From: Heteronotia binoei
Lineage: Eukaryota
Direction of reading: 5' to 3'
Assembly (NCBI RefSeq): GCF_032191835.1
Contig: NC_083231.1
Coordinates: 2,170,001 to 2,234,000, forward strand
Length of the DNA: 64,000 nucleotides
Part shown: positions 4,057-54,300 of the stretch, piece after piece
How the letters are laid out: the number at the start of each line of letters is the position of its first letter
Numbering within the stretch: position 1 is the stretch's first letter
Translations under genes and position numbers: made by a program
The notes under the pieces: model-generated
The model's input: the letters and a program-made list of their open reading frames with translations, nothing else
What the model was told of the DNA's origin: nothing
The model's database searches: none

Positions 4057-4267
4057 GGGGAGGGACGGTGGCTCAGTGGTAGAGCATCTGCTTGGTAAGC
4101 AGAAGGTCCCAGGTTCAATCCTCTGTATCTCCAACTAAAAAGGGTCCAGGCAAATAGGCATGAAAAACCTCAGCTTGAGACCCTGGAGAGCCGCTGCCAG
4201 TCTGAGTAGACAATACTGACTGATGGACCGAGGGTCTGATTCAGTAGAAGGCAGCTTCATATGTTCA
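4057..4267 (+). mobile_element. tRNA-headed SINE with CR1-type tail (second copy at 59329-59538)
   Basis: GGTGGCTCAGTGGTAGAGC...GGTTCAATCC head and GATGGACC...GGCAGCTTCATATGTTCA tail. The two copies align end to end. Confidence 0.8.
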
Positions 4268-9728: not shown

Positions 9729-10235
<507 letters not shown>

Positions 10236-10342
10236 CTAGAACATTTTATTGGAAAGTCAACCAGTTACACAGGAATGGCTGATTTGAAAGGGAAGCACTT
10301 ATCTATTACAATTTTCTATTGTTTTTATCTAGGGTTGTCATA

Positions 10343-10945
10343 GAATCATAGAGTTGGAAGGGAACTCCAGGGTCATCTAGTCCAACCCCTTGCATAATGC
10401 AGGAAATTCACAAATCCCCCCCCCCCCCTCTAAATTCACAGGATTTGTGTTGCTGTCAGATGGCCATCCAGTTTGGTGTAGTGATTGTGTGGACTCCTAT
10501 CTGGGAGAACCAGGTTTGATTCCCCACTCCTCCACTTGCAGCTGCTGGAATGGCCTTGGGTCAGCCATAGTGTTCATAGGAGTTGTCCTTGAAAGGGCAG
10601 CTGCTGTGAGAGACCTCTCAGCCCCACGCACCTTACAGGGTATCTGTTATGGGGGAAGGAGATAAAGGAGATTGTGAGCCGCTCTGAGACTCAGAGTGGA
10701 GGGCAGGATATAAATCCAATATTCCCATCATCATCATCCAGCCTCTGTTTAAAAATTTCCAAGGAAGGAGAGCCCACCACCTCCCAAGGAGGAAGCCTGT
10801 TCCACTGAGGAACCACTCTAATGGTCAGGAAGTTCTTCCTAATGTTGAGCCAGAAACTCTTTTGATTTAATTTCAACCCACTGGTTTTGGTCCTACCTTC
10901 TGGGGTCACAGAAAACAATTCTGCACCATCTTCTAAAGCAGTGTT
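10343..10945 (-). mobile_element. CR1 LINE 3' fragment, split by a SINE at 10472-10734
   Basis: LFSVTPEGRT...RKNFLT..VVPQWNRLP.EVVGSPSLEIFKQRLD, and a CR1 tail (AGAATCATAGAGTTGGAAGGG on the plus strand). Confidence 0.9.
10472..10734 (+). mobile_element. Squam3-like SINE (tRNA head, L2-type tail) inserted in CR1
   Basis: Head GTTTGGTGTAGTG...GGTTTGATTCCCC, tail GATATAAATCCAAT(CAT)n, and CATCCAG duplicated on both sides (10465-10471 and 10735-10741). Confidence 0.8.
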
Positions 10946-11186
10946 TCCCAAAGTGGGCGATATTGCCCCCTAGGGAGCGTTGGAACAATCCAGGGGGGTG
11001 GTAGTAGCAATTGCGAGGCGGTGCAATTGCAGGGCAGTGAATAAAAATAAGGGGGCAATAGAAGCCTAAAGTAAGAAGAGAAGAGGGTGGGAGCGGAGGT
11101 GTCAAAACATCACATTTCTAGGTCCAGAATTTCTAATTTAGAGAAAAAATCCAAATAACAAAAATAAAGGATTCCCTTTTGTCTGC

Positions 11187-11525
11187 TAGAATCATAGAGT
11201 TGGAAGGGATCTCCAGGGTCATTTAGTCCAACCCCCTACACAATGCAGAAAACCCACAAATACCTACCCCAAATTCACAGGATCTTCATCGCTGTCAGAT
11301 GGCCATCTAGCCTCTGTTCAAAAACGTCCAAGGAAGGAGAGCCCACCACCTCCTGAGGAAGCCTGTTCCACTGAGGAATTGCTCTAACGGTCAGGAAGTT
11401 CTTCCTAATGTTGAGCCATAAACTCTTTTGATTTAATTTCAACCCACTGGTTCTGGTCCTACCTTCTGGGGCCACAGAAAACAATTCCACACCATCCTCT
11501 ATATGACAGCCCTTCAAGTATTTAG
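11187..11525 (-). mobile_element. CR1 LINE 3' fragment
   Basis: ORF 11275-11517 is the CR1 ORF2 C-terminus, with the same tail as 10343. Confidence 0.9.
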
Positions 11526-12253
11526 AGTGAATTCACCCCATTAGACTAGTAATGAGGACCAGAACTCCGTCCAATTAAAATATAAGAAGGATGCAGTTTA
11601 TTTACAAGACAGAATAAAAAATAGAGGTGTACAGACAAGAAACACAGAAACAAAAAATCTTACTAGTCTATCCTAGCCAATACTTGTTACAGCTAGCAGC
11701 TTCTCAAGGTTGCTTGCAGTTTCTCTCTCAGCAATACAGTTTAAATCAGGACAGTTGGAAGCACTGAGGCAATTGCACAAACTTCTCTGAAGAGTTCCAA
11801 CCTGTGGCTTTCTCCTCACAAAGTTTTCAAACTTCTTACAGTCCTCTGGTTACCAGTTGATCGCTTCTGTTGATTTCAGCCAACTGCAGGGCCCCCGACA
11901 CAGTGTCTTCTGCAGGGCCAGCATATGGGAGTAGGCAGGGTAGGCAACCACCTAGGGTGCCACTATACCAGGGGGCGCTGTTGGGTGCCCCCTTACTCCC
12001 CCTTCCCATGTGGCACTTATCTGGGCTCTATGCTGAGCATATCTGGGATGGGATTTCTAAAAACTGTTTTCTCCCTGTGATTTCTTGTGAAATGATAGAT
12101 AAATGACTAATCGGAGCAGATTATCACAAAATGGTAAAGACCAGAATGTATTAATCCCCATTTTTAGGTCAGCCATAGACACCCTAGCTCCATTCAGGCA
12201 TAACACAACATCACTTTAACTATGGTAATTTTGTAAAACCAAAAGCTGGCCGG

Positions 12254-12497
12254 TTTTCTTTGCAGGGCAAACATTGCCTTGCGCTTGTTGAACGCTTCCA
12301 AGGAAGCCTCTGAAGAGCGCCCCATTTTACTGCTGCCTGCTGCTTTCGGGTTAAAAGTGGCTGGTGGTGGCACCTTCCCATTGCACTAGTTGGAGCTTTC
12401 AATCCAAAAGTAGCAGGCAGCAGTAAAACTGGTCACTCTTCGGAGGCTTCCTTTGAGGCTCCGACAAGCACAGACAATGTTTGCCCTGTGAAGAAAA
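12254..12497. repeat. Decayed fold-back element with ~92-bp inverted arms
   Basis: 12254-12346 aligns to the reverse complement of 12407-12497 with scattered mismatches. Confidence 0.75.
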
Positions 12498-13134
12498 GCT
12501 CATTGCGGCAGCACTTGTGTGCTCTGGGCTTGCCTGCTGACTGGCATGATGACATCGTCACCAGCATGCAAAGAATATCCCCCCTTAGGAGCACACGGGG
12601 CGGGGCATATGGGGGGTTCTGCCTAGGGTGGTAGAACCCCTAGTGCCGGCGTTGGTCTTCTGTTCCTTTTCTTCAGAAGAGAGCACATACAAAATTGGGT
12701 TTAAAGGAAATGGTCAAATTCTCAGTTTACAAATTCCTCAGGCTTTTCAGTGGAGAAAAAAAGCATTTTTAAAAACAATCTACTTCATTTGTACTCCTGC
12801 TTCTCATTCCAAATAGGGACCCAAAATGGCTTATAACAGTTTCTTCTTCTCCATTTTATCTTCGTAATAGCCCTGTGAGATAGACTAGCCGAGGGATGTG
12901 TAACTGGCCCCAGATCACCCAGCAAGCCTCTATGACAAAGTGGGCAGCATTCGAACCTGGTTCTTCCAGTTGGACACTCTAACTACTACAACATCAGGGG
13001 AACCTCTTTGCACAGCCTCTTGGGACAGAGATGACTAAAACTCAAAGATATTTTCTTGATACTGGAGAACAAGAAATAGCTTATGGCTGTCAGTAAGACA
13101 GGGTTGCACTTACCTGCAACTGTGATTCATTCTG

Positions 13135-13138
<4 letters not shown>

Positions 13139-13197
<59 letters not shown>
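13139..13197. repeat. (AG)n microsatellite, ~29 units
   Basis: Read directly from the sequence. Confidence 0.97.
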
Positions 13198-13199
<2 letters not shown>

Positions 13200-13460
13200 A
13201 CCTTGGCAGTCGCACAAACACAGACTTTCTGGGCATCACTGTCCCAGATTGGGGCTTCCCTGAATCCTCAGACCCACCTGGTTCAGCAGCACATAAAGAG
13301 TAGTCCATGACTGCCTCTATAATAGGCGAGGCACCACAGTCTGGAGAGAGCAACCCCCAAACTCACCAGCCAGAGGTCACAGTGCATTTCTGGTGCTATT
13401 CTATTAGATGCAAGTATGTATGATGGCGGAATCATTTAAGACAAGTCCATCAGTCATTCA

Positions 13461-15740
13461 GTCAGGTAAAGGCCATCCTAAAGAAGAAGGTCTTGCAGGC
13501 CCTGCGGAACTGTTCAAGGTTCCGCAAGGCCCGCACTTCTTCCGGGAGCTGGTTCCATAGGTGTGGAGCTGCAATGGAGAAGGCCCGTGTATGAGTACTC
13601 TTTAATTTTGCCTCCTTCAGCCCGGGGATAGTCAGTTGGTTCTTCCCCACTGACCTCAGTGCTCTCTGGGGTTCAGGTAGGCAGGTCCTCGACCATATAG
13701 GGCTTTAAAGGTAATAACCAGCACTTTGTAGCGAACCCGGTATACAACTGGCAGCCAGAGCAGTCCGCGTAGCCCTGGCTGTATGTGCTCCCATTTCGGG
13801 AGCCCTAATAACAGCCTAGCTGCTGTGTTCTCCACCAGCTGCAGCTTCCAGGTTCAGCACAGAGGCAGTCCCATGTAGAGGGCATTACAGTAATCCAACC
13901 TTGAGGTGACCGTTGCATGGATCACTGTTGCTAGGTCCTGACACTCTAGGAAGGGGGCCAACTGCCTTGCCCGCTTCAGATGAAAAAACGCTTACTTGGC
14001 AGTGGCTGCTATGTGGGCCTCCATTGATAATGAAGGCTCCAGTAGAACTCCCAAGCTCCTGACTCGGTGCGCCGCTTTCAGCGGCGTACCGTCAAAGACC
14101 GGGAAAGGAATTTCTCCTCCCAGAGCGCCGCGACCCATGCAAAGGACCTCTGTCTTCGTCGGGTTCAGCTTCAACCCACTCAGCCTAAGCCAACCTGCCA
14201 CAGCCTGCAATGCCAGGTCGAGATTCCCTGGGACGCAGTCAGGCCGGCCGTCCATTAGCAGATAGAGCTGGGTGTCATCTGCATATTGATGGCACCCAAG
14301 CCCATACCTCCGGGCAATCTGGGCAAGGGGGCGCATGTAGATGTTAAATAACATTGGGGAGAGAACTGCTCCCTGCAGCACTCCACAATCTAGTGTGTGC
14401 CGCTGGGACAGCTCACCCCCAATTGCCACCCTTTGTCCCCGTCCCTTGAGGAAGGTGGAAAGCCACTGTAGGGCCACCCCCTAACCCCTATGTTGGCGAG
14501 GCGGCGGGTCAGTAAATGATGGTCGACCGTATCGAACGCAGCCAACAGATCTAACATCAGCACTGCCACGCCACCTCGATCCAGATGCCGCTGGAGGTCA
14601 TCTACCAAGGCGACCAGCACTGACTCCGTCCCATGGCCCGGGCAAAAGCCGGACTGGCAGGGGTCTAGAATGGAAACGTCATCCAGGAAGCCCTGCAACT
14701 GCAACGCCACTGCCCTCTCTATAATTTTACCTAAAAACGGTAAATTAGAGACCGGCCGGTAATTTGCCAATTCGGCCAGATCTGCTGTACTCTTTTTTAG
14801 GAGGGGACAAACCATAGCCTCTTTCAAAGGTGTTGGAAAACGCCCCTCTGAGAGGGATCTATTTATGATGTCCCGTAAAGGACATCTAAGCTCCCTCTGG
14901 CAAGATTTAATCAGCCAGGAGGGCAAGGGTCCAAATCACAAGTTGTTGGGTGTGCAGTCGAGAGAATTCCGTCAACTTCCTCCAGGCTGAGTGTGTCGAA
15001 GCGATCCAGAACTAAATCAGAAGACAGGCACGGGGCCTCAAGTTCATGTACTGTATCCAATGTGGTAGGCAAGTCCCAGCGGAGCGACGTGATCTTATTT
15101 GCAAAACATTTCGCAAAAGCCTCATAGCCTATCTCTAATTCTCTCACGTTTGGTCTGCTTTGAGGCAGTGTAGTAAGATTTCCAATTATTCTAAATAATT
15201 GTGCCGGGTGCGAATTTGCAGACGCAATCCTAGCCGCAAAGTAATCTTTCTTTGTGGCCTTGACTGCCATCTCATGACTTCATGAATGTTCTATAGGATG
15301 TTCTCGTCGCTTCATCACGAGTATGCCGCCACTGCCTCTCTAGCCGTCTGAGCCCTTGTTTCAGCTGTCGCAGCTCCGAGGTGTACCATGGAGCCAGCCT
15401 CACACGAGGGCGCAGAGGGCGTCGAGGTGCAATCTCGTTGATAGCCCTGGATAGCTGGTTTTGCCAGGTCTCAACCAGGTCATCAAGGGAATCGCCAGGG
15501 ATCCCGCAGAGCTATTTTGGAACCGTTCCAGATCCATCAGGCTCCGCGGGCGAGCCAAAATAGGCTCTCCACCCATACAGGGTTGAGGCAGCGTCTCCAT
15601 ACGGGCCTTGAGGGCTAGGTGATCCGACCATGGCACTGCTTCTGCCGCGATATCGTTCACGAAGATCCCGGACGCAAAGATCAGGTCTAATATGTGCCTG
15701 CCTGGTGCATAGGAGTCGTAACAAATTGAGAAAGTCCTAG
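13461..15740 (-). mobile_element. L2-clade LINE, 5'-truncated, frameshifted ORF2
   Basis: Endonuclease end (WSDHLAL), RT motifs (NYRPVSNLPFLGKIIER, QSGF, LDL.AAFDTVDH, QGAVLSP, YADDTQLY) and C-terminus (RAFSIAAPHLWNQLP). Confidence 0.92.
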
Positions 15741-15889
15741 TGTCGCCATGGAAGACACTAGACCCATCGCCTGATTGGAGGCCATATCACCACTCATGTC
15801 ATCTCCACTCCAGGCTAAACACACCTAGCTCCTTCAGCCTTTCCTCTCAGAACTTGACCTCATTGCCCTCCTCTGCCATTAGATCTAAC

Positions 15890-16715
15890 AATACCTGCCT
15901 CAATCCAGCTGCCTACAGAGATCGTCTGTGAGAGCAACCAGTGCTATCTCTGGCCCATGATCAAGGTGGAAGCAGGACTGAAATGGGTCCAGAGGTGATT
16001 TCTCCAGGAAAGCTGGAGCTGTTCCGATGCCTCCCTATTACCATACCCAGGAACAAGATTCTATACTGGATGGCAATTGGATGGATCAGTAGGATCCAAC
16101 TATGATTTCTTCAAGAGCAGCCTCAGCACAGCCTCCTTTAATCCCCTCAGGAAGACCCCCAAACTCAGGGAGAGATTTATAATGGCCATCAGAGAGACTC
16201 ATTCCATCACCACTGGCTTTCATCAGCCATGATGGGCACAGGTCTAAGATGCATGTGTTAAGCTTCATAGCACCCAGTATCCTGTAGACATTTGCCCAGA
16301 AAGTCTGGACCCAAAGATGGCTAAAGGGCCTCCAGTTCATGTACTGCATCAATGTTGGCAGGCAGGCCCTGGTGCAGAAACAAGATTTTGACCAATCTCG
16401 CACTCACCTTACGCCGCTCTCACGTTCGTCTTCTCAGCGCGGCTTCCTTCTGATTTCCTACTATCTGCCTCGGGGCTGCAGCAAGGATCATTGTTTTCAT
16501 GCAGCAAACAGAAACTGCTAAAAAACAGTTTCTGTTTGCTGCGTGAAAACGACGATCCTTGCTGCAGCTCCGAGGCAGATAGTGGGAAATCGGAAGGAAG
16601 CCGCGCTGAGAAGACAAACATGAGAGCGGTGTAAGGTGAGTGTGAAATTTGTCTTTGTCGGCAAAAAAGCTTGCAAAGTCCTCACAACTAATTGCTGAAT
16701 CACTAACATTTGGAG
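15890..16715 (-). mobile_element. Older L2 LINE fragment interrupted by a MITE
   Basis: Degenerate L2 ORF2 (CEDFASFFADK|ILF, LDLCPSWLMKA, LKEAVL) that reads through once 16390-16653 is removed. Confidence 0.75.
16390..16653. mobile_element. Fold-back MITE (PIF/Harbinger-like)
   Basis: 128-bp inverted arms (16390-16517 and 16526-16653), 8-nt loop, 3-bp TSD TTT. Confidence 0.85.
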
Positions 16716-16780
16716 TTTTTTAAAAAGACACCAAGATCTTTCAAGATGTCCAGATTTTATTGTGTCTGATTCAACTAGAT

Positions 16781-19700
16781 TGTCAAGCATGGTGAAATTC
16801 CATTGATAATTGATTGTTTTAGGGTCCTGCCTAACCTGGTCTGTGAAGTATCATGGAGGATCCAACTTTGCTAGCTTGTTATTCTTTCCCTTCCCTCCAT
16901 CTTGCTTTATGGCTTATAATTAGAAGTAGTGAGAACTGAAACCAAGTAATCAGCACCTTCCCATACATTCCTGTAAGGGAGTACGAGACATCTGGGGAAA
17001 GCAAGGATGCAGTCCTGATAACACTATGGGAATGTAGACATTTATGCTAGTTTATGTGTGAATGCTACCCCGCAACCCCATCCCTTGGAATCCTTTTGAA
17101 GTAAGCCTTAAAAGTATTGTATCAATGTATTGTCAGCATTACTCTCAAGAACCTGTTATACCAAAGTATCTGTCTATCAATAAATGTAGTCTTTGTGCCG
17201 GAGTACGCTCTCTTAAACCTAGTAGACGCCCCATATATTCCTGAACATGCGGAGGAATTAATCTCGCATATTTCGTGGCAGCTAAATTTGCAATAGCTTT
17301 GGTCTGGAAGCAAAATCTCCTCCCTCGAGGCAGGCCTGGTGGCTGAAACTGTGGGATTATTTTGTCTTAGATAAGCTTACTTATGATTTAGATCCCCATT
17401 GTTCTTCCCAAACTGCTTCCTTGAGTTTTATGCGAAAATGGCGTCCCTTCCCAAACTGCTTCCTTGAGTTTTATGCGAAAATGGCGTCCCTTCATTAGTA
17501 AAGTCTCAAAGGACAGCGGAAGCCCTAATGACTCATATCATGCTATACTGATGTCATGCCAACTAATGTTGTAACTTGTTTTTCATTGGTCAATCTTGTA
17601 TGTATCCACTTCCTCATTTTATATTGGTACTTGGTACGCACCTATTGATGTACTACCATCTCTGTACCTGAAACTTTATATTAATAAAGCTTTTCAAAAC
17701 TTAAAAAAAAATGTAGTCTTTGTATCAACTTCGACTCGTCATTGAACCCGCATGCTTGACATTTTGAGACTAAACTACAAGAAGTTTAACCGCCCTGGCA
17801 ACTTTATAGCTGAATGGCTGAAAAGATTCCAGTAAGCAGTGAACTTCCCGAACCTGAGGAAGGGGCGAGAGCACCAACCCCAATGTGGCACGTGCTGGAC
17901 GCCCGGAGAGTCGCTGGACCGAGTTCCCCTCTCCACATTCAACAACTATTGGTCACCCCGCAGCAGTGGCAGCCCCGTACCTCCACCACCACGAAGGATG
18001 AGGCTCCAGCACGCCGAGAAGCCATTCTAACCAGGCACATGCGCCGGGTAAAGATGGCCAACGAAGGGGGTGAGAACCCTGGACCCGGAGAGGAAGAGGG
18101 CACAGAGGCTTGTAAGAAAGTGGCCTTGTAAGTAGTGATCGGTGCAGAAGCCGACCCCCCTCTGGGCACGGGACTTGGGAACCCCGAAACACCTGGCCCG
18201 AGAGAGGAGGAAGATGAGATGGCTCGTGAATTCCGTGCGATGATCCAAAAGGAGGTTGAAGAGGTCACCAAGGGATTGCGGGACGAGATGCAGGAGATAA
18301 CCACCATGATGGCTGGAGAGTTCAACAGGCAAATTGACCGAGTCCTGGGAACGACCCACCCGAGAAGAGCCCCGCAACCGCCTGTGGTTAGACCCCCAGC
18401 AGCGCTGCTGCCACTGCAACCGGCGGCGCCCCCAGCCCCACTAGAGGGGGGCCGCGGGAGAGAGTTGGAAGCCACCTTTGACGGAGATCCCGAGGAGGTG
18501 GAGTATTTCACGATCCAGGCGAATAGCTACATGCACTATTGGGGGGAACACCTTGCCTGATGAATTCAGTCATGTGGACTATCTGGGATCAAAATTGAAG
18601 GGGGCCGCCAAAAGGTGGTACGTGAGCCTGTACAAGGCCATGAGCCCGGAGCTGGACTTTGTGGCCACTTTCTTACAAGCTTTGCTAGCCCAGTACGAGG
18701 GCCCTCTGCAAGAGACCCGTGCCCTGGCCGCCCTGAGGGACATGCAACAAGACTCCAAGACGATTCGGGAGTATGCAGCCGAGTTCCGTACCAACGCGGC
18801 CAAGGTGAGGGGGTGGAGTGAACTGATGAAGATTGAACACTTCACCCGCAGGCTGAACGCGAGCTTCCTGGATCGAGCCCTGCAACAAGCCAGACCAACC
18901 AACCTGGTGGGATGGATCCAACTGGCGGGAGAAGTGGAGACCAATATGAAGAGAGTGGCCATGCAACGGCAACATCAGAGCAGTAAGTCAAGTCGTGACC
19001 CGAAACCCAAAGGGAAGACGGAGGCGAAGAAACCCCAAGGGGGGGGGAGCCAGGGGAAAACCACCGGGCACCCGCAAATGCTTCAGGTGCAGGGACCCAA
19101 ACCATCTGGCCAGCAGCTGTCCGAACCCTCCCAGGCCACCATCGAGCATCTCTAAGACAAGCACTCCGGCACCAAAGAAGCAGGCCGGCCGCCCTAAGGA
19201 AGCGGAGAAGAGCAGTGCAGCCATGAGTTCGATGCCTGATGACGACACCATCGTCACCAATGAGATGAGTGAGATGTCCTGGGCTGACGAGCCACTGAGA
19301 AACGAGGACGACCTGCTCTAAATGGTGCCAGCCAGCAGGTCGCCGATGAACCGGCACCACTCAGGATGAGAGTAACGGGGTCGCTATATTTTGTGCCAGT
19401 AATTTTGCTAAACAGCAAACTCAAGAGGTTCGTGCAAGTGAAAGCCCTGATTGATTCGGGCTGTACCAGAGACATAATCACCCCTAAACTGGTGGACGCA
19501 TTGGGGCTTCCCACGATGGCCTTGCCGCACCCCATCCAGTTTGAACAGATGGATGGGTCAGTAATGAGGGGGGAGCCATGTGTGTTAGAGACTCAGTTAG
19601 TGCCGTTGGGCATCAAAGACCACTGGGACCAGGCGGCCTTTGTAATTGCCCCCTCCTCCTCTTACAATGTGGTTTTGGGAGTGGGTTGGTTGACCAAGCA

Positions 19701-22700
19701 TGAGCCAGACATTCGGTGGGGCGACCAGACAATAGAATTCAATGACCCGAGATGTAAAGCCCATCACTGGACTAAGGAATGGGGTCCCAGTCCACCGCCC
19801 CGAAATGAGAAAGTCTGCTTGACAACGGAAGAGGTTCAGGCAATCCCTAATGCCTATAAAGACTTGAGGGGGGTGTTCAGCGAACAGGGGGCCGATGAAC
19901 TACCACCCCATAGGGACATGGACTGTGCCATTGAACTGATCCTGGGGCAAACCCTACCTAAGGCCAAACTGTATTCGATGGGGTGGGCGGAAAAGGTGGA
20001 ATTGCGGAAATTCCTAGATAAGAACTTGAAATGAGATTTCATCCAACCCGCCACAGCCCCCCATGCAGCCCCAGTCCTCTTTAGAAAAAAGGACGGCTCG
20101 CTCGGACTTTGTACTGATTTTCGGGGGATTAATGGGATCTCCACCTCCAATGCCTATCCTATCCCCCCTCATCAAGGACTTACTCAGCACGGTGTCGGAG
20201 GGAAAGGTGTTCACAAAGCTGGACTTGAGGGATGCGTATTTTAGAGTGCGCATCAAAGAGGGGGATGAATGGAAAACGGCGTTCAATACACCCATGGGAC
20301 AGTTTGAGTATCTAGTAATGCCATTTGGGTTGCAAGGGGTTCCGGGAGTGTTCATGAACTTTATCAATGAGGTGTTGAGAGAATATCTGTTCAAGGGGGT
20401 GGTGGTGTACCTGGATGACATCATTATCTATTCACAAGATCTCCCATCGCATGTGAAATTAGTGAGGGAGGTTCTTAGCACCCTATTGAAGCACAAACTG
20501 CATGCTAAATTGTCAAAATGTGAGTTCCATAAGACCGAATTTGACTATTTGGGCTTCAGGGTATCAGCACAGGGGTTAGCCATGGACCCGAGTAAGGTTC
20601 AAGCGGTACCGGATTAGGCTCCCCCGAGGACACGTAGACAGCTCCATTTGTTCCTCGGGTTCGCCAATTTTTACCGAACCTTTATACCAGGGTTTGCCAA
20701 ATCATGTTACCCCTCACGGAGTTGCTAAAAACCAGAGGTAAGGGTCCGGACGCAAAAAAACCGGGGGGCAAAACTAAATTGGACACAGAAGCGCCAAGAG
20801 GCGTTCAATAAGCTCAAACAATTGTTCACTAGTGAACCAGTTTTAAGCCACCCTAATGAGCTGAAGCCCTTCATTGTGCAGCGTGATGCCTCCAATGTCG
20901 CCGTCAGAGCCATCCTCATGCAAAAAGATGAGGAGGGGAGGCTAAAGCCCTGTGCCTATATTTCTAAAAAGTTTTCCCAGGAGCAGAGAAATTGGTCGGT
21001 ATGGGATAAAGAAGCTTTTGCTGTGACTTACGCTCTAAAGACCTGGAGGTCATGGCTAGAAGGCGCTAAAGTGCCATTTGAAATCTGGACCAATCACAAG
21101 AATTTGGAAGCGCTCACCGGTCGGCGTAAACTCAGTGAAAAGCAGATCAGGTGGGCGGGTTTTTTTTCCAAATTCGACTTCGTGCTGAGGCACATCCCTG
21201 GGACAAAAAACTTTTTGGCGGACGCCCTTTCGCGCCTTCCTCAGCACAATAGCCAAAAAGAGGAGGTGGTAGACTCTCTGATCCCTCTCTCTCAACTAGC
21301 CGCCATGGTAACCACCCGGTCCAAAACACGGTGGAATCTGCAGCCCGATAAGTGGGGGAGAGAGCGCCTGGCCATAGAAACTGAAAAGGAGGGGGAAGAC
21401 AGACCGGAGGAAGTACAGAAAGGGGAGGATGGGTTTTGGTATAAAGTTGACAAGCTGTATGTCCCTAAGAGCCTACGGTCCGAAGTCTTGCAATTCTACC
21501 ACTCTAACAAATTAGCTGGCCACTTTGGGTATGTGAAGACACTGCATTTAATTAACAGACAGTTTTGGTGGCCTTCCATGAAAAAGGACGTTTCTGAATT
21601 CGTTGCCTCCTGTCCAATTTGCTTAATGGCAAAAAAGGGGGAGGGGAAGCCCCCCGGGCTGTTAAAACCTCTGGAGACACATGTCCTTGGTCTGTGGTGT
21701 CAATGGATTTCATAGTCGAACTACCAGTCTCACAAGGCAAAACCATAATTCTGGTAGTAGTGGACACCTTCTCCAAACAAGCACATTTCATCCCCTGTGC
21801 GCAGCTGCCAACAGCTAAGAGATTAGCCTATCTATTTTTCCATCACATTGTAAAACTACACTTGTTCCCGGATAAGATTATTAGTGACAGAGGGCCACAG
21901 TTCGTTGCCAACTTCTGGCGGGAGTTCTGTAAGTTATCAGGCATAGAACAAGGGTTGAGCTCAGCCTACCACCCCCAGACAGACAGACAGACAGACAGAA
22001 CGCGTGAACGCACTGTTAGAACAATATTTATGGTGCTATGTGAGTCACCAACAGTCTAACTGGGTGGATCTCTTGCCGTTTGCTGAGTATGGTTACAATA
22101 ACAGCGTGCACAGCTCAACCAAGGCTTCCCCGTTTCAGATTGTAAATGGGTATGAGGGGAAGCCTGTTCCGTTGCTGCCAGGGGGAGAGCAAACCCGTGA
22201 CCCCACCTCGTTCGAACAACGGTGGGGAAAATTAGGGAACAGCTGGAAGGGAATTCAAGAGAATTTGGAGGCCGCTAAGGAGGCGTACAAAAAACAGTAT
22301 GACAAATCCCATGTACCCACTTGGGATTTTAAAGTGGGGGATTCAGTATTTGTGTCAACAAAAAACCTCCCACTGAATCAGCCCTCCAAGAAGCTGGCGT
22401 ATAGATTCTTGGGTCCTTTTTAAGATCAAGAGGGTGATTAACAAAGTGACCGTAGAATTGGCCCAAAATGTTTAGTAAAATACACCCTGTCTTTCATTGC
22501 AGTCTTTTGCGAAGAGACCCGGGTGGTTCTCCTTGGCACCCTCGACCACCAGCTCCGCAACCTATCCAGATTGGAAATCAGAGTCATCATGAAGTACAAG
22601 AAATATTAAATTAAAAAATGAAGCGTGGAGTTTTGTATTATTTGATTAAGTGGAAACATTTCCCAGCCAGTGAAAATGAATGGGTAGCAGAAAAAATGAG

Positions 22701-23209
22701 TTAGCCCCTGATTTGGTAAACAAGTTTCCTTAGAAGCCCCGAGGCTGATTTTAGGGGGGGCAGTATGTCAAGCATGGTGAAATTCCATTGATAATTGATT
22801 GTTTTAGGATCCTGCCTAACCTGGTCTGTGAAGTATCATGGAGGATCCAACTTCGCTAGCTTGTTATTCTTTCCCTTCCCCCCCGTCTTGCTTTATGGCT
22901 TATAATTAGAAGTAGTGAGAACTGAAACCAAGTAATCAGCACCTTCCTATACATTCGTGTAAGGGGGTATGAGCCATTTGGGGAAAGCAAGGACGCAGTC
23001 CTGAAACCCCAAGGGGAATGTAGTGTTTATGTGTGAATGCTACCCCGCAACCCCATCCCTTGGAATCCTTTTGAAGTAAGCCTTAAAAGTATTGTATCAA
23101 TGTATTGTCAGCATTACTCTCAAGAACCTGTTACACCAAAGTATCGGTCTATCAATAAATGTAGTCTTTGTATCAACTTCGACTTGTCATTGAACCTGCA
23201 TGCTTGACA
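16781..23209 (+). mobile_element. Ty3/gypsy Tf1/sushi-type (chromovirus) LTR retrotransposon, element A, decayed
   Basis: LTRs at 16781-17761 (containing an L1 insert) and 22766-23209, with TGTCAAGCATG...CATGCTTGACA termini and 5-bp TSD TAGAT. Gag from 17814 has a capsid-like domain and CX2CX4HX4C. Pol has protease (ALIDSGC), RT (YLDD), RNase H, integrase and a chromodomain. PPT is AGGGGGGG-CAGTA. Many stops and frameshifts. Confidence 0.95.
17197..17708 (+). mobile_element. 5'-truncated L1-type LINE inserted in the 5' LTR of element A
   Basis: Absent from the 3' LTR. 15-bp TSD AAATGTAGTCTTTGT (17182-17196 and 17709-17723), AATAAA plus A-tail. Frameshifted ORF2 C-terminus (AAKFAIALVWK...WLKLWDYFVLDKLTY...RKWRPF). 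Confidence 0.85.
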
Positions 23210-27821: not shown

Positions 27822-28283
27822 TTTGGGATCACAGGACAAGGAAGGGGAGTTTGACATCAATTTCACAGGCTCAATCCTCATGGGGAAAACATACAAGCAC
27901 ATACATGGTGCCTGTGAGGTATTGCCACTGCTGGTCCAAGGGGGACAGGAAAATGGCCAAACCCTCACACTACAGCCTCACCCCACTCTGGTTGCTTCTC
28001 TTTACTACTAAAAATCCATGGCTGATCTCTTTAGATAGCTGGTCTAGTTAAGCACTTGGGTACTAGTTAAGCATCTGAGGCTCTCCATTGCAGCTCTGCC
28101 CCTCCAGTCTCTAACCACACAATCTCTTAAAGGCTTAAGCAAATGCTTCCTCCAGGCCTTGGATTCAGTGGGAGCTCACAGGAGCACAGCTCCTGAACCT
28201 CCTTGTCCACTGAATAGTAGGTGCAGCTGCATAACAATCCCTGGATGAGCTCCACCACCTATTTTTCTACAAAATGACCACTG

Positions 28284-31200
28284 TGTCAAGTCTGCTGTAT
28301 TTTGGTTGACCTATTCTCTAACTCTGGTTCAGAAGCAAGGGATTCTGGGTAGATCACACTGAACACTGAATGCTGCTAGCTAACTCTCCTTCCCCCCTTT
28401 CATAGCTATGCCTTTGTTATGTAGCCTGCTTTGAAATGCTGATATGTGAACAAGATAGTAGAGCCTTCTCAGGCCGGGTGTCTGTGGGAGTGTTAAGCGC
28501 CAAGGCCTTGGCTTGGGAACGAGGGAGTAACATCCTAGTGCGAAAATATACTGCATAGAGTGCCCCGCCCGTAGGAATCCTTTGATCTATACCTTAAATG
28601 CTTGGTGAATGTCCATGTACCCCAATCCTTCAATCTCTATCATGGTCTTCAGTTCTGCTTTCAATAAACTAGTAACTTTGTTTCAACCAAAGACTCGTTA
28701 TTGAATTCAGCCGACTTGACATTTTGAAGGACTCCCTATCTTGGAGTTCAACCTTTCCGGCAACTTGAAAAGGCGATGACCGACCAGACTCCGGACAACG
28801 GAGAACTCCCAACCAGAGCGGAGGGGGCTGAGACACCCTGGCACATCCATACTGCCAGAAGGACCGCGGCTTCTCCCCCCCAGTTTCAACTGGTGGTTAC
28901 TCCCCGGCAATACCAACCGAGGACCTCCACCACGCTGATGGACCAGGCACCGATCCGCCGGGAGGCAATCATGACCCGCCACACCAAGCGGGTTCAACTG
29001 GCTGAAGCCGCGGCTACCAACCCGGGCGAGTCGGGCGAAGGAATCGAGGCAACCGTGACCCAAGTCCCCGGTAGCGGAGGCGAAAGTGCGGAGTGTGGGG
29101 CGGAGGATGGGGGGCCGAAGCCCAAGGACCCGCACGATGAGGACTATGAGATGTTTCGGTCGATGGTCCACCGCGAGGTCGGCGGAGCGGTGAAGGACCT
29201 CAAGGACCAGATGCAGACCCTAACCACGCAGCTGGGGAGAGCGTTGGGGGTGACCGGGGCCCGTCAGCAACAGCCAGGGCCGGCGGGGCCTCGGGGCCGC
29301 CCAAGCCAACTGCCACCCGTCGCCCCCACGGCTCCCCAAGCGCCGGCGGCACCCCCACCTGCCCCGGTTAGGCAGCGAGACTTGGGGGGGGGGGCCGGGA
29401 GCTGGATGCCACTTTCGACGGGGACCCGGAGGAAGTGAACTACTTCACGATCCAAGCGAACAGCTATATGTACTATTGGGGGGACCTGTTCCCCGACGAG
29501 ATGAGCCGAGTGGATTACCTGGGGTCGAAGCTGCGGGGCGCTGCCAAGAAATGGTACGTGAGCCTGTGTGAGACCAACAGCCCGATCCTGCACTTCGTAA
29601 ACACGTTCGTGCAAGCCCTACTGACCCAGTACGAGGACCCCTTGCAGGAGGCCCGAGCGCTATCGGGACTACGGAACATGAAGCAAGGGGACCGATCCAT
29701 CCGGGAATACGCGGCAGATTTCCAGGCTAACGCTGCCAGGGCCTGGAACTGGAACAAAGTAATGAAAATCGAGCACTTCACCAACGGGCTGAACCCTAGC
29801 ATCCTGGACCGGGCGCTCACCCAAGCCAACCCAGACACGCTAGTGGGATGGATCCAGCTGGCGGGAGAGGTGGAAACCAACCTGAAGCGAGTGGCAATGC
29901 TGTGCCAAGCACTGGCTGAGGGCAAAGGAGCGCCCAAAACCACTCCCCGGAAGGCCGAGCCTCCCAAAGCCAAGAAGCCGCCGGTGGCCGCTCCGGCGGG
30001 GCCCCGCCGTTGCTTCCGGTGCGGTGACCCAAACCACCTCGCCTCCAACTGCCCTCAGCCTCCCGCGGGAACCACCCAGGCGCCAGGGTCAACCAGGCAG
30101 AGCACCCCGGAACCCAAGAAGCCCCCTGGCCGCTCTAAGGATGCGGCGAAAAGCAGCGCGTTGATGGTGCAGGAGGAGCTGCAGGAAGAAGAGGTCCGTC
30201 TATCCGCAGAATTGGCCGACCTCGCGTGGGAAGAGGAGCCGGCGGGAAACGACTCCGACCTGCTCTGAACAGTGCCAGCCAGCAGGTCGATCGGGAAAAG
30301 GCACCACTGACGGTGAGAGCCACGGGAAGACTGTACTTTGTGATGGTAAAATTGTTGAACCCAAAGTTGAGAAGGTTCCTACAAATTCGAGCCCTCGTAG
30401 ACTCGGGGTGCAACCGAGAACTAATCTCCCCCAAGGTGGTGGAGGCCCTGGGGCTAGAGCGCTCACAGCTGCCCCACCCCATGCTGTTTGAGCAGATGGA
30501 TGAGTCAGTGATGGGGGGGGAGCCCTGTACGCAGGAAACAGAGCCATGCCCCTTGGGGATTGAGGCCCATTGGGACCAGGTGACTTTTGTCATTGCCCCG
30601 GCCTGCGGCTATCCAGTAGTGTTGGGAGTGGGGTGGCTGGAAAGGCACAAGCCGCTCATTCGTTGGAAGGCACAGACCATTAGGTTCCCCGACCCAGATT
30701 GCAGCGGGCACTTATAGAACACGGCGTGGGGGCCGCAGGTGCCCGCCGCCCGAGAGAGGGCGTGCGTCCTGGTAGAGGAGGTGCACCATGTCCCGAGTGC
30801 ATACCGCGACCTGATGGAGGTGTTTAGCGAGCGGGAAGCCAATCAACTACCCCCCACATCGGAACACGGACTGTGCCATAGAACTGATCCCCGGGGAAAG
30901 CCTACCCCGGGCCAAACTCTACCAGATGGGGTGGGCCGAGAAAAAGGAACTGCGCAAATTCTTAGACTTGAACCTGGACAGGGGTTTCATTAGACCCGCA
31001 ACGGCCCCCCATGTGGCCCCGGTTTTGTTTAGAAAGAAGAAGGATGGGACGCTTAGACTTTGCACTGATTTTCGCGGGATAAACGCGATTTCGATGTCCA
31101 ACGCCTACCCCATCCCCCTCATCAAAGACTTACTGAACACGGTGTCGGGGGGGAAGATATTTACAAAACTCGACCTGAGAGACGCGTACTTCCGAGTGCG

Positions 31201-34061
31201 CATCAAAGAGGGGGATGAGTGGGAAACGGCGTTCAACACTCCAATGGGGCAATTTGAGTATTTAGTTATGCCGTTTGGGTTGCAGGGGGCGCCGGGGGTG
31301 TTCATGAACTTCATAAATGATGTGTTGAGAAAATTTCTGTACAAGGGGGTGGTGGTGTACCTGGATGACATCATTATTTACTCCCAGGATGAGCAATCTC
31401 ATGTAAAATTGGTGAGGGAGGTACTGAGCACCCTGCTAGAGCATCAACTGTATGCGAAACTGTCTAAATGCGAATTTCACCGCACCGAACTAGACTACCT
31501 CGGGTTCCGAGTGTCTAGAGAAGAATTAGCCATGGACCCCGCAAAAGTGCAGGCGGTCTTAGAATGGGCCCCCCCAAGAACACGTAGACAGCTCCAATCA
31601 TTTCTCGGGTTCGCAAATTTTTACAGAGGATTCATTGAGGGGTTCGCCCAGATCGCCCTGCCCCTAACTGACCTCCTAAAGACAAAGGGGAAGGGCGAGG
31701 ACGCGAAGCGACCCGGGGCCAAGCTAAACTGGACGCCCACCTGCCAGGCGGCTTTCGACCGGCTCAAGCAACTGTTCACTAGCGAGCCGGTCCTGAGCCA
31801 CCCGGATGAGCAAAAGGGCTTCATGGTGCAATGCGACGCTTCCGACGTCGCCGTAGGAGCCATTCTCATGCAGAGGGATGGGGCGGGGAAACTGCGACCC
31901 TGTGCCTACATCTCGCGGAAGTTCTCCGACGAGCAGAGGAATTGGTCGGTGTGGGACAAGGAGGCTTTCGCAGTCATGTTTGCATTAAAAACCTGGAGGT
32001 CGTGGCTAGAGGGAGCCAAAGTGCCATTTGAAGTGTGGACTGATCACAAAAACCTCGAAGCGCTAACTGGGAGACGGAAACTGAGTGAAAAGCAAATCAG
32101 GTGGGCGGGATTCTTTTCCAAATTTGATTTCACCCTAAAACACATCCCAGGGACCTGGAATTTCTTGGCCGACGCCCTGTCAAGGCTCCCGCAACACGAG
32201 AGCCAGAGGGAGGAGATGGTAGACTCGCTAATATCCCCCACGCAAGTGGCGGCCATGGTCACCACCCGCTCACAGAAAAAGAAGGAACTGGACGGGCTCA
32301 GCCGCGACCGCATCGCCTTGGAGACCGAGAGGGAGGGAGGTGGGCAGCCCGAGGGGGTGCGGAAGGGGAAAGATGGGCTGTGGTACAAAGAGGAGAAATT
32401 ATACGTCCCGATGACACTGAGAAGAGAGATCTTGCAACTATGCCATTCATCTAAATTGGCCGGGCACTTTGGCTATGTAAAAACCCTGCACTTAGTGAAC
32501 CGACAGTTCTGGTGGCCGTCCTTGCGAAAGGACGTGTCGGAATTTGTAACCGGCTGCCCGGTGTGCATAATGGCGAAAAAGAGGGGGGGGGGAGCCCCCA
32601 GGTCTACTGCAACCACTGGAAACGGCCAAACGCCCCTGGGCCATTGTGTCCATGAACTTTATAGTAGAGCTTCCTTCCTCAAGGGGGAAAACAGTCATTT
32701 TGGTGGTGGTAGATACGTTTTCCAAACAAGCCCATTTCATCCCCTGTACCCAACTACCCACAGCCAAGAAACTGGCCACCCTATTCTTTGATCACGTGGC
32801 CAAACACCACTCAATCCCCGACAAAGTCATTACTGACCATGGGCCTCAGTTCGTTGCCACCTTTTGGTGGGAGTTCTGCAAACTGTTAGGGATGGAGAAA
32901 GGGCTAAGCTCAGCGTACCACCCCCAGACGGACGGACAGCCAGAGGGAGTGAACAGGGTGCTGGAGCAATATTTGTGGTGCTTTGTGAGCCAGCGCCAGT
33001 CCGACTGGGTAGATCTCCTCCCCTTTGCAGAATATGCCTATAACAACAGTACCCACAGCTCCACCAAAGCCTCCCCCTTTTCAACAGTGTTTGGGTATGA
33101 GGGAAAACCGATCCCGATGCTGCCGGGGGGGGGGGGGAGACCCAGGCACGGGCTCTGCCTTCAAACAATGGTGGCAGGGACCCAGCCAGTGCTGGCCATC
33201 CATCCAGGAGAACTTAAAAGTAGCAAAGGAGGCTTACAAGAAGCAATATGACAAGTCTCATGTACCAGTCTGGGAGCTAAAGGTTGGAGACTCAGTATAC
33301 CTGTCAACGAAAAATCTGCCCCTCTCCCAACCATCCAGGAAATTGGCTTTTAAATTCTTGGGTCCCTTTAAGATCAAGCGAGTAATCAACCCAGCAACTG
33401 TGGAATTAGATTTGCCTCCTGCCCTTGGTAAAATCCACCCTGTGTTTCATTGCAGCCTGCTCCGTCGAAATCCGGAACCGTCCCGTTGGCATCCGCCAGA
33501 ATCAACATCCCTCCCCGTCAAAGGGGAGTGTCGGAGCCTCTGGGGCCCCGAAACACTGAGCTATAATCGGGAGCAAACCTTCCCTCGAGCCCGCGCTGCA
33601 GGAGGGGCTTAGGGGGGGCAGTATGTCAAGTCTGCTGTATTTTGGTTGACCTATTCTCTAACTCTGGTTCAGAAGCAAGGGATTCTGGGTAGATCACACT
33701 GAACACCGAATGCTGCTAGCTAACTCTCCTTCCCCCCTTTCATAGCTATGCCTTTGTTATGTAGCCTGCTTTGAAATGCTGATATGTGAACAAGATAGTA
33801 GAGCCTTCTCAGGCCGGGTGTCTGTGGGAGTGTTAAGCGCCAAGGCCTTGGCTTGGGAACGAGGGGGTAACATCCTAGTGCGAAAATATACTGCATAGAG
33901 TGCCCCGCCCGTAGGAATCCTTTGATCTATACCTTAAATGCTTGGTGAATGTCCATGTACCCCAGTCCTTCAATCTCTATCATGGTCTTCAGTTCTGCTT
34001 TCAATAAACTAGTAACTTTGTTTCAACCAAAGACTCGTTATTGAATTCAGCCGACTTGACA
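28284..34061 (+). mobile_element. Ty3/gypsy Tf1/sushi-type LTR retrotransposon, element B, young, no chromodomain
   Basis: 438-bp LTRs at 28284-28721 and 33624-34061, with only 3 differences seen, and TSD CACTG. Gag 28776-30268 (CFRCGDPNHLASNC). Pol in the -1 frame from ~30244 to 33612 (ALVDSGC, YLDD, RNase H, HHCC/DDE integrase). PPT present. Confidence 0.97.
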
Positions 34062-35011
34062 CACTGGTTTCCTCAGTAACTGACCAACAGGATCAAGGGG
34101 GCGAGGGGAAAAAAATTAAGGCAGCAGAATGTACTCAGTAAAATGCAGCAAAGAATACCGCAGCCAGGGAATTAAAAAGCAGAACACTGGTTCTAGCTTC
34201 CAATTGCCATATATGTCCATGGAAAAACCCTGGCAACAGCCAGCAACTAGATTTGGAAATCAGAGTCTCTCTCTCTCCTGCTCTTGAGAGGAACACCTCT
34301 GTGAGAACTTGTGAGGTCACATTAGCAGGTGCATGTGAAGGAGTGGAAAATCAAACCTGGTTTTCCCACTGCACAAGCTGGCTAGGAGATGTTGCATGAC
34401 ATCCAAGAAGCATAACTTTTGCTAACATCAAACAAAGGGTCCTTAACCAAAAGACTGTTTCCTTGCCATTCCTTCTCTGATTCAGCAGGTTGGCCCAGTC
34501 CAAGGGCAATTATAAGGAATATTCTGCACAAACACACTCACAACACAAGCATCTGTTGGGCTAACATTACACACAGCTGCATTACACTGTCTTCTTTGGC
34601 CCTCAAGACAGGACATTAGTTGCACAGGGTGCATTCAGACACAAGGACTCAATGACCCAGTGCAACAAGCATGAACTTTAGAAGCCCCCAGCCTTGTGGA
34701 GTCGCTCTCTTTCCCTGCTCTCTCTCGGGTCCACATGAAACCCTGACAGCTTTGAATAAGTATAGCTTCTGAATGGGATCTCATAACACAGGGGTTTTTG
34801 CATATGGTAAAAAGTTTATTACAGCCATTTTAAAATGTGCTTTAATTAAGATATAAATTTAAAATACAAATAAATAAATTATTGTTCTCCTTTCCCCACT
34901 ATTTGGAACCAAAACAAGACATCCTTGCCAGCTGCACGTACAAAACTAAATCTTTCACTGGCATCCAGAGCAGCTCATGTTCAGTTGGACCTGTCTCCAT
35001 CTGGAATTTCA

Positions 35012-51310: not shown

Positions 51311-54300
51311 TGTAGTGTATCATCAGCGATACGCGCCCTGCGCAGAGGCGACTGGGCTGTCCCAGGCGCTCCAGCGTAGGGCGCGGAATCCCCCGCCAAT
51401 CACCAGCTGTGGCGGGAAGTTCAACAGGTCAGGATTGGCCTGGCCTGCCCAGTAGGCTGTACCGGGGATTGTATATAAGCGGGACCCGGCCCGCGTGTTC
51501 CCTCTCTTGCAACGTGCTCTGAATAAAGAATGTTGCCCTACCCGCGTCTCCGGACTGAGTACGTTACACTGGCGACGAGGATGGGATTCTAGCCTCATCG
51601 GCTACGCCGGAGATCAAGGGCACCACCAGGCCACGACCACCGCCGCAGCTGCCATGGCCACCCAGGGCGGAACCACCGGTCACGTTGAGCCGTTCGACCC
51701 CGCGAATCCAGAGGCCTGGGAGTCCCACTTGGAATGGGTTGAATGCTACCTGAGGGCCAACAAGGTCACGGAGGACAGTATGAAGAGGGACGTTCTCCTG
51801 AGCGTCTGCGGTGCAGCCACATTCGAGATCGCTAAAGGTCTCTCGGCCCCCGCCCGCCTCACGGAGAAGTCCTTCGCGGAAGTCAGCAGCTCCTCACCGG
51901 CCATTTTTTGCCTCAGCTTTCACGGGTGGCTCGCCGGTTCCTGTTCCACAGAAGGGACCAGGCTGCAGGAGAATCGGCCGCCGACTACTTGGCGGCGCTA
52001 CGCAGGATCGCCAGGAACTGCAACTTCCCCCAGCTGGAAGAGACCCTGGCCGATCGCTTCACGTGGGGCCTCCACGACGAGAGGCTCCAGCAGAAGCTCT
52101 TCGCCAAGGAAGAGCTCACCCTCCAGAGCGCCTTCAGCGAAGCTGTGGCGTTCGAAAGGACTTCGAGGACCTTTCCCAAGGCCCGCACAGACGCCGTCCA
52201 CCACGAGGAGCTGGACCACGACCGCCCGGAAGAGGGAGAAGCCTACCAGCTGCGCCGCCCAGCTGGGCCACCCAACTGAGCATCCCCGGGCCCCGAGCGC
52301 CGGAACGTCCCCCAGCGTCGGAGAGGTCTCCAGCCCCCAAGTGCGCCAGCTGCGACGACCCACACGACAGACGGGACTGCCAGTACCGGACCTGGGACTG
52401 CCGGAGCTGCGGGAAGACCGGCCACATCGCGAGGGCCTGCCGGACCAGGCCCAGCTGTCGGAGGCCGACCACCCACCAAGAGTCCGCGGAGTTCCACTCC
52501 ACAGCATCCACGAACATGCAGGTACTGAACTTGCCCCTGAGCGTCCCAAATAAAATGAAAATGGCGGTCCTAATAGAGGGCGCCCCCTGCCAAATGGAGG
52601 TGGACTCGGGCTCCTCCATTTCCATTATATCAGAGGAGACCCTGAGGAATCTGTGCCCCGGGCAGCGGGTTCAGACAAGACCGGCGGACTTTGTTCTAAG
52701 AGACTTTCAGAAGAACCCGGTGCAGATCGCGGGGTGGGCCCGGGTGCATGTCGAGCGGGGGTCCTTTAGGGGGCCGTTGGACATTCTGGTGGTCAAGCGC
52801 CAGCTGACCACCCTACTGGGTCTGGCGTGGTTCAAACCCCTGGGAATATGACTGGAGGGGGTGGGGCAAATCCTATCCACCAGTGGGTTCGGGGAGGTAT
52901 GCCGCGAGTTCCCCGACATGTTCGATGGGTCCTTGGGGAGCTACAAAGGGCCGGCCATCTCCCTACCGCTGGACCCGACGGTCCGACCAATCAGGCTAAA
53001 GGCCAGAAGGGTTCCTTTCGCCCTCAAGCCCAAGATAGAGGCGGAATTGGACCGGCTAACGGCCCAAGGGGTACTGGAGCCAGTAGACTACGCCACGTGG
53101 GAGACCCCCATAGTCACACCGGTCAAGCCTAATGGGGAGGTGCGGATCTGTGCTGACTATAAGTGCACCATAAACAGGGCACTTCAAGACAATCCGTACC
53201 CAGTGCCGGTGGTGAGCCATGTTCTGGCAGCCCTAGCAGGGTCAAAGATCTTCGGGAAGCTGGACCTGGCGCAGGCCTACCAGCAGCTCCCGGTAGATGA
53301 AAAAACGGCAGAGGCCCAAACGATCGTCACACACAGGGGGGCTTTCAGGGTGCGGAGGCTACAGTTCGGGGTGAGCGTGGCTCCAGGGATTTTCCAAAGC
53401 ATAGTAGACGCTCTCCTTAAAGGAATCCCCAGAGTCCAACCGTTTTTCGACGACGTTTTGATCGCCGCCCCGGACCCCGAAGAATTCAACAACCGCCTCA
53501 GAGAAGTGCTCCGCCGGTTCCAGTCTGCGGGGCTCAAAGTCAAGCGGGAAAAGTGCTTACTGGGAGTTCTGTGGGTGGAGTTCCTAGGGTTCGCGGTAGA
53601 CGCCGCAGGAATCCACCCGCCGGAAGAGAAAACACGAGCCATCGTACAAGCCCCGGCCCCCACTTGCAAAGCAGAACTCCAAAGTTTCCTGGGGTTGCTC
53701 AATTTTTATCATACGTTCCTCCCACACAAGGCAGCCTTGGCGGAACCGCTACACCGGCTGCTGGACAAACACGCCCCTTGGGTATGGGGCAAATGCCAAG
53801 CCGCCACATTCCAGGCGGTTAAGGACACGCTGGTCTCAAATGCTGTGCTCCACCACTTTGATGAGCGCCTTCCGGTCATACTGGCCTGTGATGCGTCTCC
53901 ATATGGGGTGGGCGCAGTCCTGGGGCACCAACTCCCGGACGGGAGGGAGGTGCCAGTAGCCTATTACTCCCGCACGCTAACGCCGGCAGAGCGCAATTAC
54001 GCTCAAATCGATAAAGAGGCGCTAGCCATAGTAGCGGGGGTACACAAGTTCAATGATTACCTCTATGGGCGGAGGTTCACGATCGCCACCGACCACAAGC
54101 CGCTCTTGGGCCTGCTAGCGCCGGACCGCCAAACCCCACAAATACTGTCCCAGAGGGTACTGAGGTGGAACCAGTTCCTAAATTCATACACGTACACACT
54201 GGTCCACCGAGCAGGCAAAACAATGGGCCACGCGGACGCGCTCAGCCGCTTGCTGCTTCCGGAAGTGGGTCCCGCCCCCGCACACCATGTCATGCTAGTG

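Follow-up and report, generated by a model that had tools for sequence, protein, structure and literature searches.

The window analysed here, a 64-kb stretch of Heteronotia binoei DNA, contains on its forward strand a sushi-type LTR retrotransposon, referred to below as element B, which is a defective copy. The element is bounded by a 5-nt target-site duplication and carries two LTRs of equal length that differ from each other at exactly three positions (28367 T/C, 28526 A/G, and 28625 A/G). Its features are listed below in window coordinates, with + denoting the forward strand.

28279-28283, +: left target-site duplication of element B, CACTG; the same 5 nt are repeated at 34062-34066
28284-34061, +: whole of element B, 5,778 bp; sushi-type LTR retrotransposon, defective copy
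28284-28721, +: 5' LTR, 438 bp, with TG..CA ends; 99.3% identity with 33624-34061
28594-28599, +: TATA-like TTAAAT, read directly, 30 nt 5' of the putative self-primer
28624-28633, +: 5' LTR copy of the primer site, AATCCTTCAA, putatively the self-primer and the beginning of R; position 28625, an A, is unpaired with the primer binding site
28663-28668, +: poly(A) signal AATAAA, beginning 39 nt after the first base of the primer site
28701-28752, +: span of a candidate U5/leader helix with arms 28701-28708 and 28745-28752
28722-28723, +: TT spacer separating the LTR CA from the primer binding site; all ten elements compared have a spacer of 2 nt
28724-28733, +: putative primer binding site TTGAAGGACT, of non-tRNA type; exact reverse complement of 33964-33973
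28776-33612, +: coding region gag-PR-RT-RNaseH-IN, broken and without a chromodomain; Pfam matches fall in separate ORF pieces
33611-33621, +: polypurine tract AGGGGGGGCAG, separated by TA from the 3' LTR; read directly, with the same motif found 5' of the 3' LTR of element A
33624-34061, +: 3' LTR, 438 bp, with TG..CA ends
33964-33973, +: counterpart of the primer site in the 3' LTR, AGTCCTTCAA, which pairs with the primer binding site over all 10 bp

The LTR termini of element B form 9-nt inverted repeats, TGTCAAGTC and GACTTGACA, at 28284-28292 and 28713-28721. The left flank of the element, at 28200-28283, is a very high-copy repeat, with a summed contig depth of about 10,000-20,000 in three RNA runs as compared to tens inside the element; B therefore appears to have inserted into a SINE-like repeat.

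Coding capacity and classification of element B

Pfam matches along B appear in the order Retrotrans_gag, zf-CCHC, RVP_2, RVT_1, RT_RNaseH, Integrase_H2C2, rve, and SH3_Tf2-1, i.e., the domain order gag-protease-RT-RNase H-integrase, and the same order is obtained when B is compared to intact snake proteins. The closest public proteins are those of squamates (Paroedura picta, Crotalus, and Pantherophis, with 55-64% identity), and the next closest are those of amphibians and fishes (44-51% identity, with fish pol at 44-47%); fungal and algal proteins show about 40% identity. Several of the proteins near B have been named after PEG10 or Tf2 by their sources. Based on domain content and pairwise identity, we assign B, a defective copy, as a putative squamate chromovirus of the Tf1/sushi group within Ty3/gypsy.

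No Chromo match was found in the last coding piece of B. The sister element A, which lies in the same window and is described below, does have a Chromo match (E 1e-8) with an in-frame stop, and the domain is also found in relatives such as P0006. Judged from these matches, the chromodomain is a trait of the family that copy B is predicted to have lost.

The homology of B to intact snake proteins passes through frames 1, 3, 2, 3, 1, and 2. One of these frame changes coincides with the expected gag/pol -1 site, and at least four others are breaks. At the transition from gag to protease (30154-30334), the homology to intact relatives shifts from frame 3 to frame 2, i.e., by -1. Because gag and pol are broken, copy B would be unable to make its own proteins, and an exact-protein look-up of its 621-aa ORF in public assemblies retrieved no record. 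Element B pairs LTRs that are 99.3% identical with at least four frame breaks and the loss of the chromodomain. This combination suggests either the copying of B from an already defective source, with proteins provided by other copies, or a later homogenisation of its LTRs.

Complementarity between the LTR and leader of element B

After the 5' LTR of element B, the sequence reads CA, then TT, then TTGAAGGACT, and this last 10-mer and AGTCCTTCAA of the 3' LTR are exact reverse complements. An earlier note on this DNA had described this pairing together with the lack of a TGG tRNA-type site after the 5' LTR, a G-to-A change in the 5' LTR copy of the 10-mer as one of only three LTR differences, and a distance of 30 nt from the TATA-like TTAAAT to the 10-mer. 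All of these hold when the letters are read directly: the bases at 28724, where the CCA end of a tRNA would pair, are TTG; the primer binding site at 28724-28733 is the reverse complement of 33964-33973 in every coordinate and letter; position 28625 is A in the 5' LTR copy and G in the other; and the motif at 28594 is 30 nt from 28624. Within the 64-kb window, the 10-mer occurs only twice, at 28724 on the forward strand and as the reverse complement at 33964-33973, with 0.27 occurrences expected by chance. Of 20,000 shuffles, 47 gave the 16 nt following the LTR an exact reverse-complement match of 10 nt to some part of the LTR, and the shuffle p value for B's 10-nt match is about 0.002-0.003.

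The two LTR copies differ in how well they pair with the primer binding site. The 3' LTR copy forms 10 bp at -14.7 kcal/mol, as compared to 8 contiguous bp at -10.4 kcal/mol for the 5' LTR copy, and RNA from copy B would bear the weaker primer. The primer binding site has a C that would pair with G, and 28625 was therefore probably a G originally. The proposal that the G-to-A change weakens priming stands as far as the weaker duplex is concerned, but the change matters little, the coding region of this copy being broken already. The chance of one of the three LTR differences landing in the 10-nt site is about 7%, and therefore nothing points to selection on the change at 28625.

Sister element A and other elements of the window

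A second element of the same kind lies in the window.

16781-23209, +: sister element A, with target-site duplication TAGAT; pol about 73% identical to that of B; same geometry as B

In element A, the LTR-terminal CA is followed by TT and then by TTGAGACTAA at 17762-17773, and the LTR site TTACTCTCAA is found at 17139 and 23114, i.e., in both LTRs. This site is complementary to TTGAGACTAA at 9 of 10 positions. Given that the LTRs of A are only 93% identical, a single later substitution within 10 nt is no surprise. In terms of mismatches to the element's own primer binding site, there is one in the 5' LTR copy of B and one in each LTR copy of A. The own duplex of A has an energy of -8.6 kcal/mol, as compared to -5.3 and -4.8 kcal/mol for the cross duplexes between A and B, and each of the two predicted primer binding sites is thus better suited to its own LTR than to that of the other element. 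A compensatory 2-nt indel between A and B was also considered, since the primer binding sites can be aligned with such a gap (TTGA--GACT versus TTGAAGGACT), and was rejected because the LTR sites lie where the two LTRs align poorly.

The 5' LTR of element A contains an insert of about 515 bp (17197-17711) that ends in an A-run and is flanked by a 13-nt duplication, ATGTAGTCTTTGT; it looks like a LINE-mediated retroposon. Around 17405-17490, about 43 bp of the insert itself are duplicated in tandem. Neither solo LTRs nor extra copies of families A and B were found in the 64-kb window. A further element of the window, at 51311-55856, has 168-bp LTRs that are 98.8% identical and a pol that is 29% identical to that of B. 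It was used as a control, and no LTR-to-leader complementarity was found in it.

Comparison with squamate relatives

For the comparison with other squamates, we used the DNA around seven relatives' proteins, in which LTR pairs were located by self-comparison and orientation was given by the pol match. This provided nine distinct sushi-like elements from Paroedura picta, Crotalus adamanteus, C. tigris, and Pantherophis guttatus (one locus, L007, duplicates another, L006), with pol 55-61% identical to that of B, and the copies were compared one by one rather than through a family consensus. Eight of the nine relatives have an 11-14-nt exact complement of their own LTR that begins 2 nt after the LTR CA (shuffle p <=0.005 each), and the ninth has 8 nt contiguous. 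In these eight, the LTR site is located 89-140 nt upstream of the primer binding site, within the same LTR. In contrast, four unrelated LTR elements from the same loci, serving as controls, gave matches of only 5-8 nt (p 0.07-0.99), and two of these four (in L003 and L006) have ordinary TGG sites with no LTR match. Individual relatives are listed here with host, match length, and LTR site.

Pp1, Paroedura: 14-nt match, LTR site GTCAGATTTGACTT
Pp2, Paroedura: 12-nt match, LTR site GGAAGCTCTTAC
Ca2, Crotalus: 12-nt match, LTR site AGTGCTAACTTA
Ca3, Crotalus: 11-nt match, LTR site GATTCTGGCAT
Ca4, Crotalus: 11-nt match, LTR site AGTGCTGACTT
Ca8, Crotalus: 11-nt match, LTR site AGTGCTGACTT
Ct5, Crotalus tigris: 12-nt match, LTR site AGCGCTGACTTT
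Pg6, Pantherophis: 8 nt contiguous, LTR site TTTGGCTG, with interrupted pairing on both sides

When each primer binding site was compared to each LTR, the match to the element's own LTR was 10-14 nt and the match to a foreign LTR was 4-9 nt. The exceptions were Ca4 and Ca8, which share a primer and match each other over 11 nt, element A, with an exact match of 6 nt, and Pg6, with 8 nt. The ten elements hold nine different primer/site pairs, the one shared pair being that of Ca4 and Ca8. Paired changes can be followed within one snake family, that of Crotalus, where the LTR sites AGTGCTGACTT, AGTGCTAACTT, and AGCGCTGACTT are each accompanied by a matching primer binding site; single changes in the LTR site, from G to A in Ca2 and from T to C in Ct5, likewise come with a primer binding site changed to match. 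By both the cross comparison and the Crotalus pairs, then, primer and site change together across related elements. The central claim of the earlier note, i.e., that RNA of the element itself rather than a tRNA serves as the primer in this family, is supported by the recurrence of the same layout in eight of nine squamate relatives and, at 9 of 10 positions, in sister element A.

Two of the relatives lie in surroundings of their own. Ca3 (L003:6405-20506) is nested in a different LTR element with an ordinary tRNA-type primer binding site, TGGCGACCACGAAGGG. Ca4, from Crotalus adamanteus, is embedded in an extended array of tandem satellite repeats whose period is about 169 bp (L004:3660-8657 and 14804-19610), a location that would fit chromodomain-guided insertion into heterochromatin.

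Putative position of the RNA 5' end and predicted RNA structure

All four canonical TATAA[AT] motifs present in 4,553 nt of the relatives' LTRs are located at -31 to -28 of the LTR site, and TATA-like motifs are found at -30 in B and Ca2 and at about -31 in A. A poly(A) signal is located at +25 to +54 of the site in nine of nine elements tested. This arrangement implies that R would be short, at about 50-75 nt, and that U5 would be a few tens of nt. The TATA and poly(A)-signal spacings agree with the proposal that the LTR site lies where a transcription start is expected; placed by motif spacing, the LTR site is the putative RNA 5' end. The only public RNA runs that contain this stretch are Logan contigs from metatranscriptomic libraries, which are short, cover U3 and R-U5 at 88-99% identity, and carry no end information; at that identity, they show that related copies exist.

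Minimum-energy RNA folds were predicted for a span beginning at the LTR site and extending 40 nt beyond the primer binding site. The complete duplex between the 5' end and the primer site was present in seven of eight relatives, and 7 of 10 pairs formed with the mutated 5' copy of B. The earlier note had additionally proposed a U5/leader helix in B, and an 8-bp pairing of TTGAATTC (28701-28708) with GAGTTCAA (28745-28752), including one G-U and with an energy of -8.1 kcal/mol, does exist. However, this candidate helix is not above chance, as 86% of shuffled leaders pair equally well or better. Several related contigs are without one base within TTGAATTC. For the best loop-to-leader duplex, none of the nine elements tested did better than its shuffles (z = +1.0 for B; z of about -1.7 for the best two). 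Such duplexes are therefore given no weight in favour of self-priming, although the results do not refute them.

Source of the primer

The LTR boundary itself bears on where the primer must sit. The LTR identity of B stops at 28721, and the next two bases are the usual extra dinucleotide; therefore, minus-strand synthesis must have begun opposite about 28723, with the 3' end of the primer paired from 28724. The only nearby TGG, at 28742, was considered as a tRNA primer site, and it misfits the observed LTR boundary, lying 20 nt beyond the LTR end. The tRNA genes of the window were likewise considered as a primer source. Two were found by ARAGORN and Rfam, and their match to the post-LTR sequence is only 5 nt.

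The tRNA-like sequences at 4062-4130 and 59335-59405 are very similar to each other, and both are above the Rfam tRNA threshold; the one at 4062-4130 is called as tRNA-Thr(GGT) by ARAGORN. They may be tRNA-derived SINE heads rather than tRNA genes.

A host RNA, e.g., an internal part or a fragment of a tRNA, could in principle act as the primer, with the LTR-leader complementarity instead serving cyclisation, dimerisation, or packaging. Half-tRNA priming exists in some copia lineages (PMC6317226), the transcription start of the present elements is placed by spacing only, and the tRNA comparison covered the two tRNA genes of the window. Nevertheless, we consider a host primer improbable. A shared host primer would hold the site constant, whereas the sites differ by lineage with each fitting its own LTR, and the complementarity in every element begins exactly where the 3' end of the primer must sit, 2 nt after the CA. 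The 5-nt matches of the two window tRNA genes to the post-LTR sequence also count against it.

A variant of self-priming is that the 5' end of one packaged RNA primes on the primer binding site of a second copy. Sequence cannot separate the fold-back of one RNA from the pairing of two, and the occurrence of 99.3% identical LTRs in the coding-dead B suggests that RNAs of the family are handled by the proteins of other copies. However, the minimum-energy folds of single RNAs already hold the duplex, and in the published Tf1 model it is the 5' untranslated region of the Tf1 mRNA that forms the primer-duplex structure (PMC10085805), so we regard priming between two molecules as unlikely. That the 10-nt match of B is a functionless chance match is scarcely credible, for although it is short and one of the two LTR copies matches incompletely, its shuffle p value is low and the same geometry is found in eight independent relatives while being absent from four control elements.

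Probable Tf1-type self-priming in a squamate lineage

In Tf1, the primer binding site is paired by RNA bases 1-11, and RNase H cleavage separates base 11 from base 12 (PMC7175516). The Tf1 "pretzel" is a three-duplex RNA, two side duplexes of which join LTR sequences and sequences flanking the primer binding site (PMC10085805). Self-priming is described as a common feature of Tf1/sushi elements, including vertebrate ones (PMC10085805, PMC7175516, PMC4600332, PMC6317226). Our literature search on self-priming in squamate chromoviruses retrieved nothing relevant. To our knowledge, self-priming has been demonstrated experimentally for Tf1 only, the vertebrate cases being drawn from sequence; for vertebrate Tf1/sushi elements such as sushi-ichi of Takifugu, it was reportedly proposed by Butler et al. 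in 2001 (J Mol Evol 52:260; cited in PMC10085805 and PMC4600332) from similar sequence evidence.

Like Tf1 and Tf2 of Schizosaccharomyces pombe, as well as Tj1, Tosmo1-3, and Tcry1, with their match of about 11 nt, element B has an LTR-adjacent primer binding site complementary to the LTR stretch at which its RNA is expected to begin. As in Tf1 and Tf2, a tRNA-type site is absent and the LTR terminates in CA; B is likewise a Ty3/gypsy element whose integrase has a Tf2-1-like SH3 domain, and a chromodomain is found in the family (element A and P0006). Unlike in Tf1, where the match is 11 nt, it is 10 nt in B and 11-14 nt in the relatives, and the two "pretzel" side duplexes are not detectable above chance in B and its relatives. 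The gag and pol of B also appear to be split by a -1 frame change, as opposed to the single ORF of Tf1 and Tf2, and the host is a reptile, with B known here from sequence alone. With vertebrate Tf1/sushi elements (sushi-ichi, Takifugu), B shares a PEG10-like capsid, a Tf2-1-like SH3 domain, a chromodomain in the family, and the 44-47% pol identity to fish proteins; it differs from them in its squamate lineage and in primer/primer-site sequences that are not common to the other elements compared. The succession of LTR-CA, 2-nt spacer, and primer binding site, the polypurine tract before the 3' LTR, and the 5-bp duplication are all as in tRNA-primed Ty3/gypsy elements and retroviruses. Unlike in tRNA-primed elements, the site of B has no initial TGG and matches the element's own LTR, whereas the controls in L003 and L006 have TGG and no LTR match. 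The layout in B is expected because membership in the Tf1/sushi group predicts self-priming.

Directly observed are the complementarity, placed exactly at the LTR boundary, its recurrence in relatives with different sequences, the promoter and poly(A) geometry, and the absence of a tRNA-type site. We consider it likely that the cis-acting 5' region of element B has a Tf1-type self-priming layout and that B is a defective squamate copy of a Tf1/sushi chromovirus. The transcription start, the RNase H cut, and the priming itself are steps that we infer. Transcription would start about 30 nt past the TATA-like motif, at or near 28624, and the first 10 or so nt of the RNA would fold back onto the primer binding site, which lies 2 nt beyond the 5' LTR. 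RNase H of the element would then cut the RNA just past the paired stretch, and the released 3' end would prime minus-strand DNA through U5 and R.

As such, element B and its relatives are a well-supported putative new squamate example of the known Tf1-type self-priming, and the mechanism is not new. They add a reptile lineage, together with a small set of comparisons from geckos and snakes, to the elements inferred to self-prime and leave knowledge of the mechanism unchanged. For the annotation of squamate sushi-like elements, they provide a rule, namely that the primer binding site be placed 2 nt past the LTR CA, where it matches an LTR stretch some 30 nt downstream of the TATA box.

The 99.3% identity of B's LTRs despite at least four coding breaks suggests that cis signals alone let defective copies spread on the proteins of others. 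In the Tf1 model, the primer binding site is re-copied from the primer in each cycle, and primer and primer binding site would therefore stay in step. Because the primer belongs to the element itself, the pair would be free of constraint by a host tRNA. We tentatively raise the possibility, though we are inclined to doubt it, that the primer/primer-site pair serves as a fast-evolving, lineage-private cis "address", there being nine such pairs in ten squamate elements.
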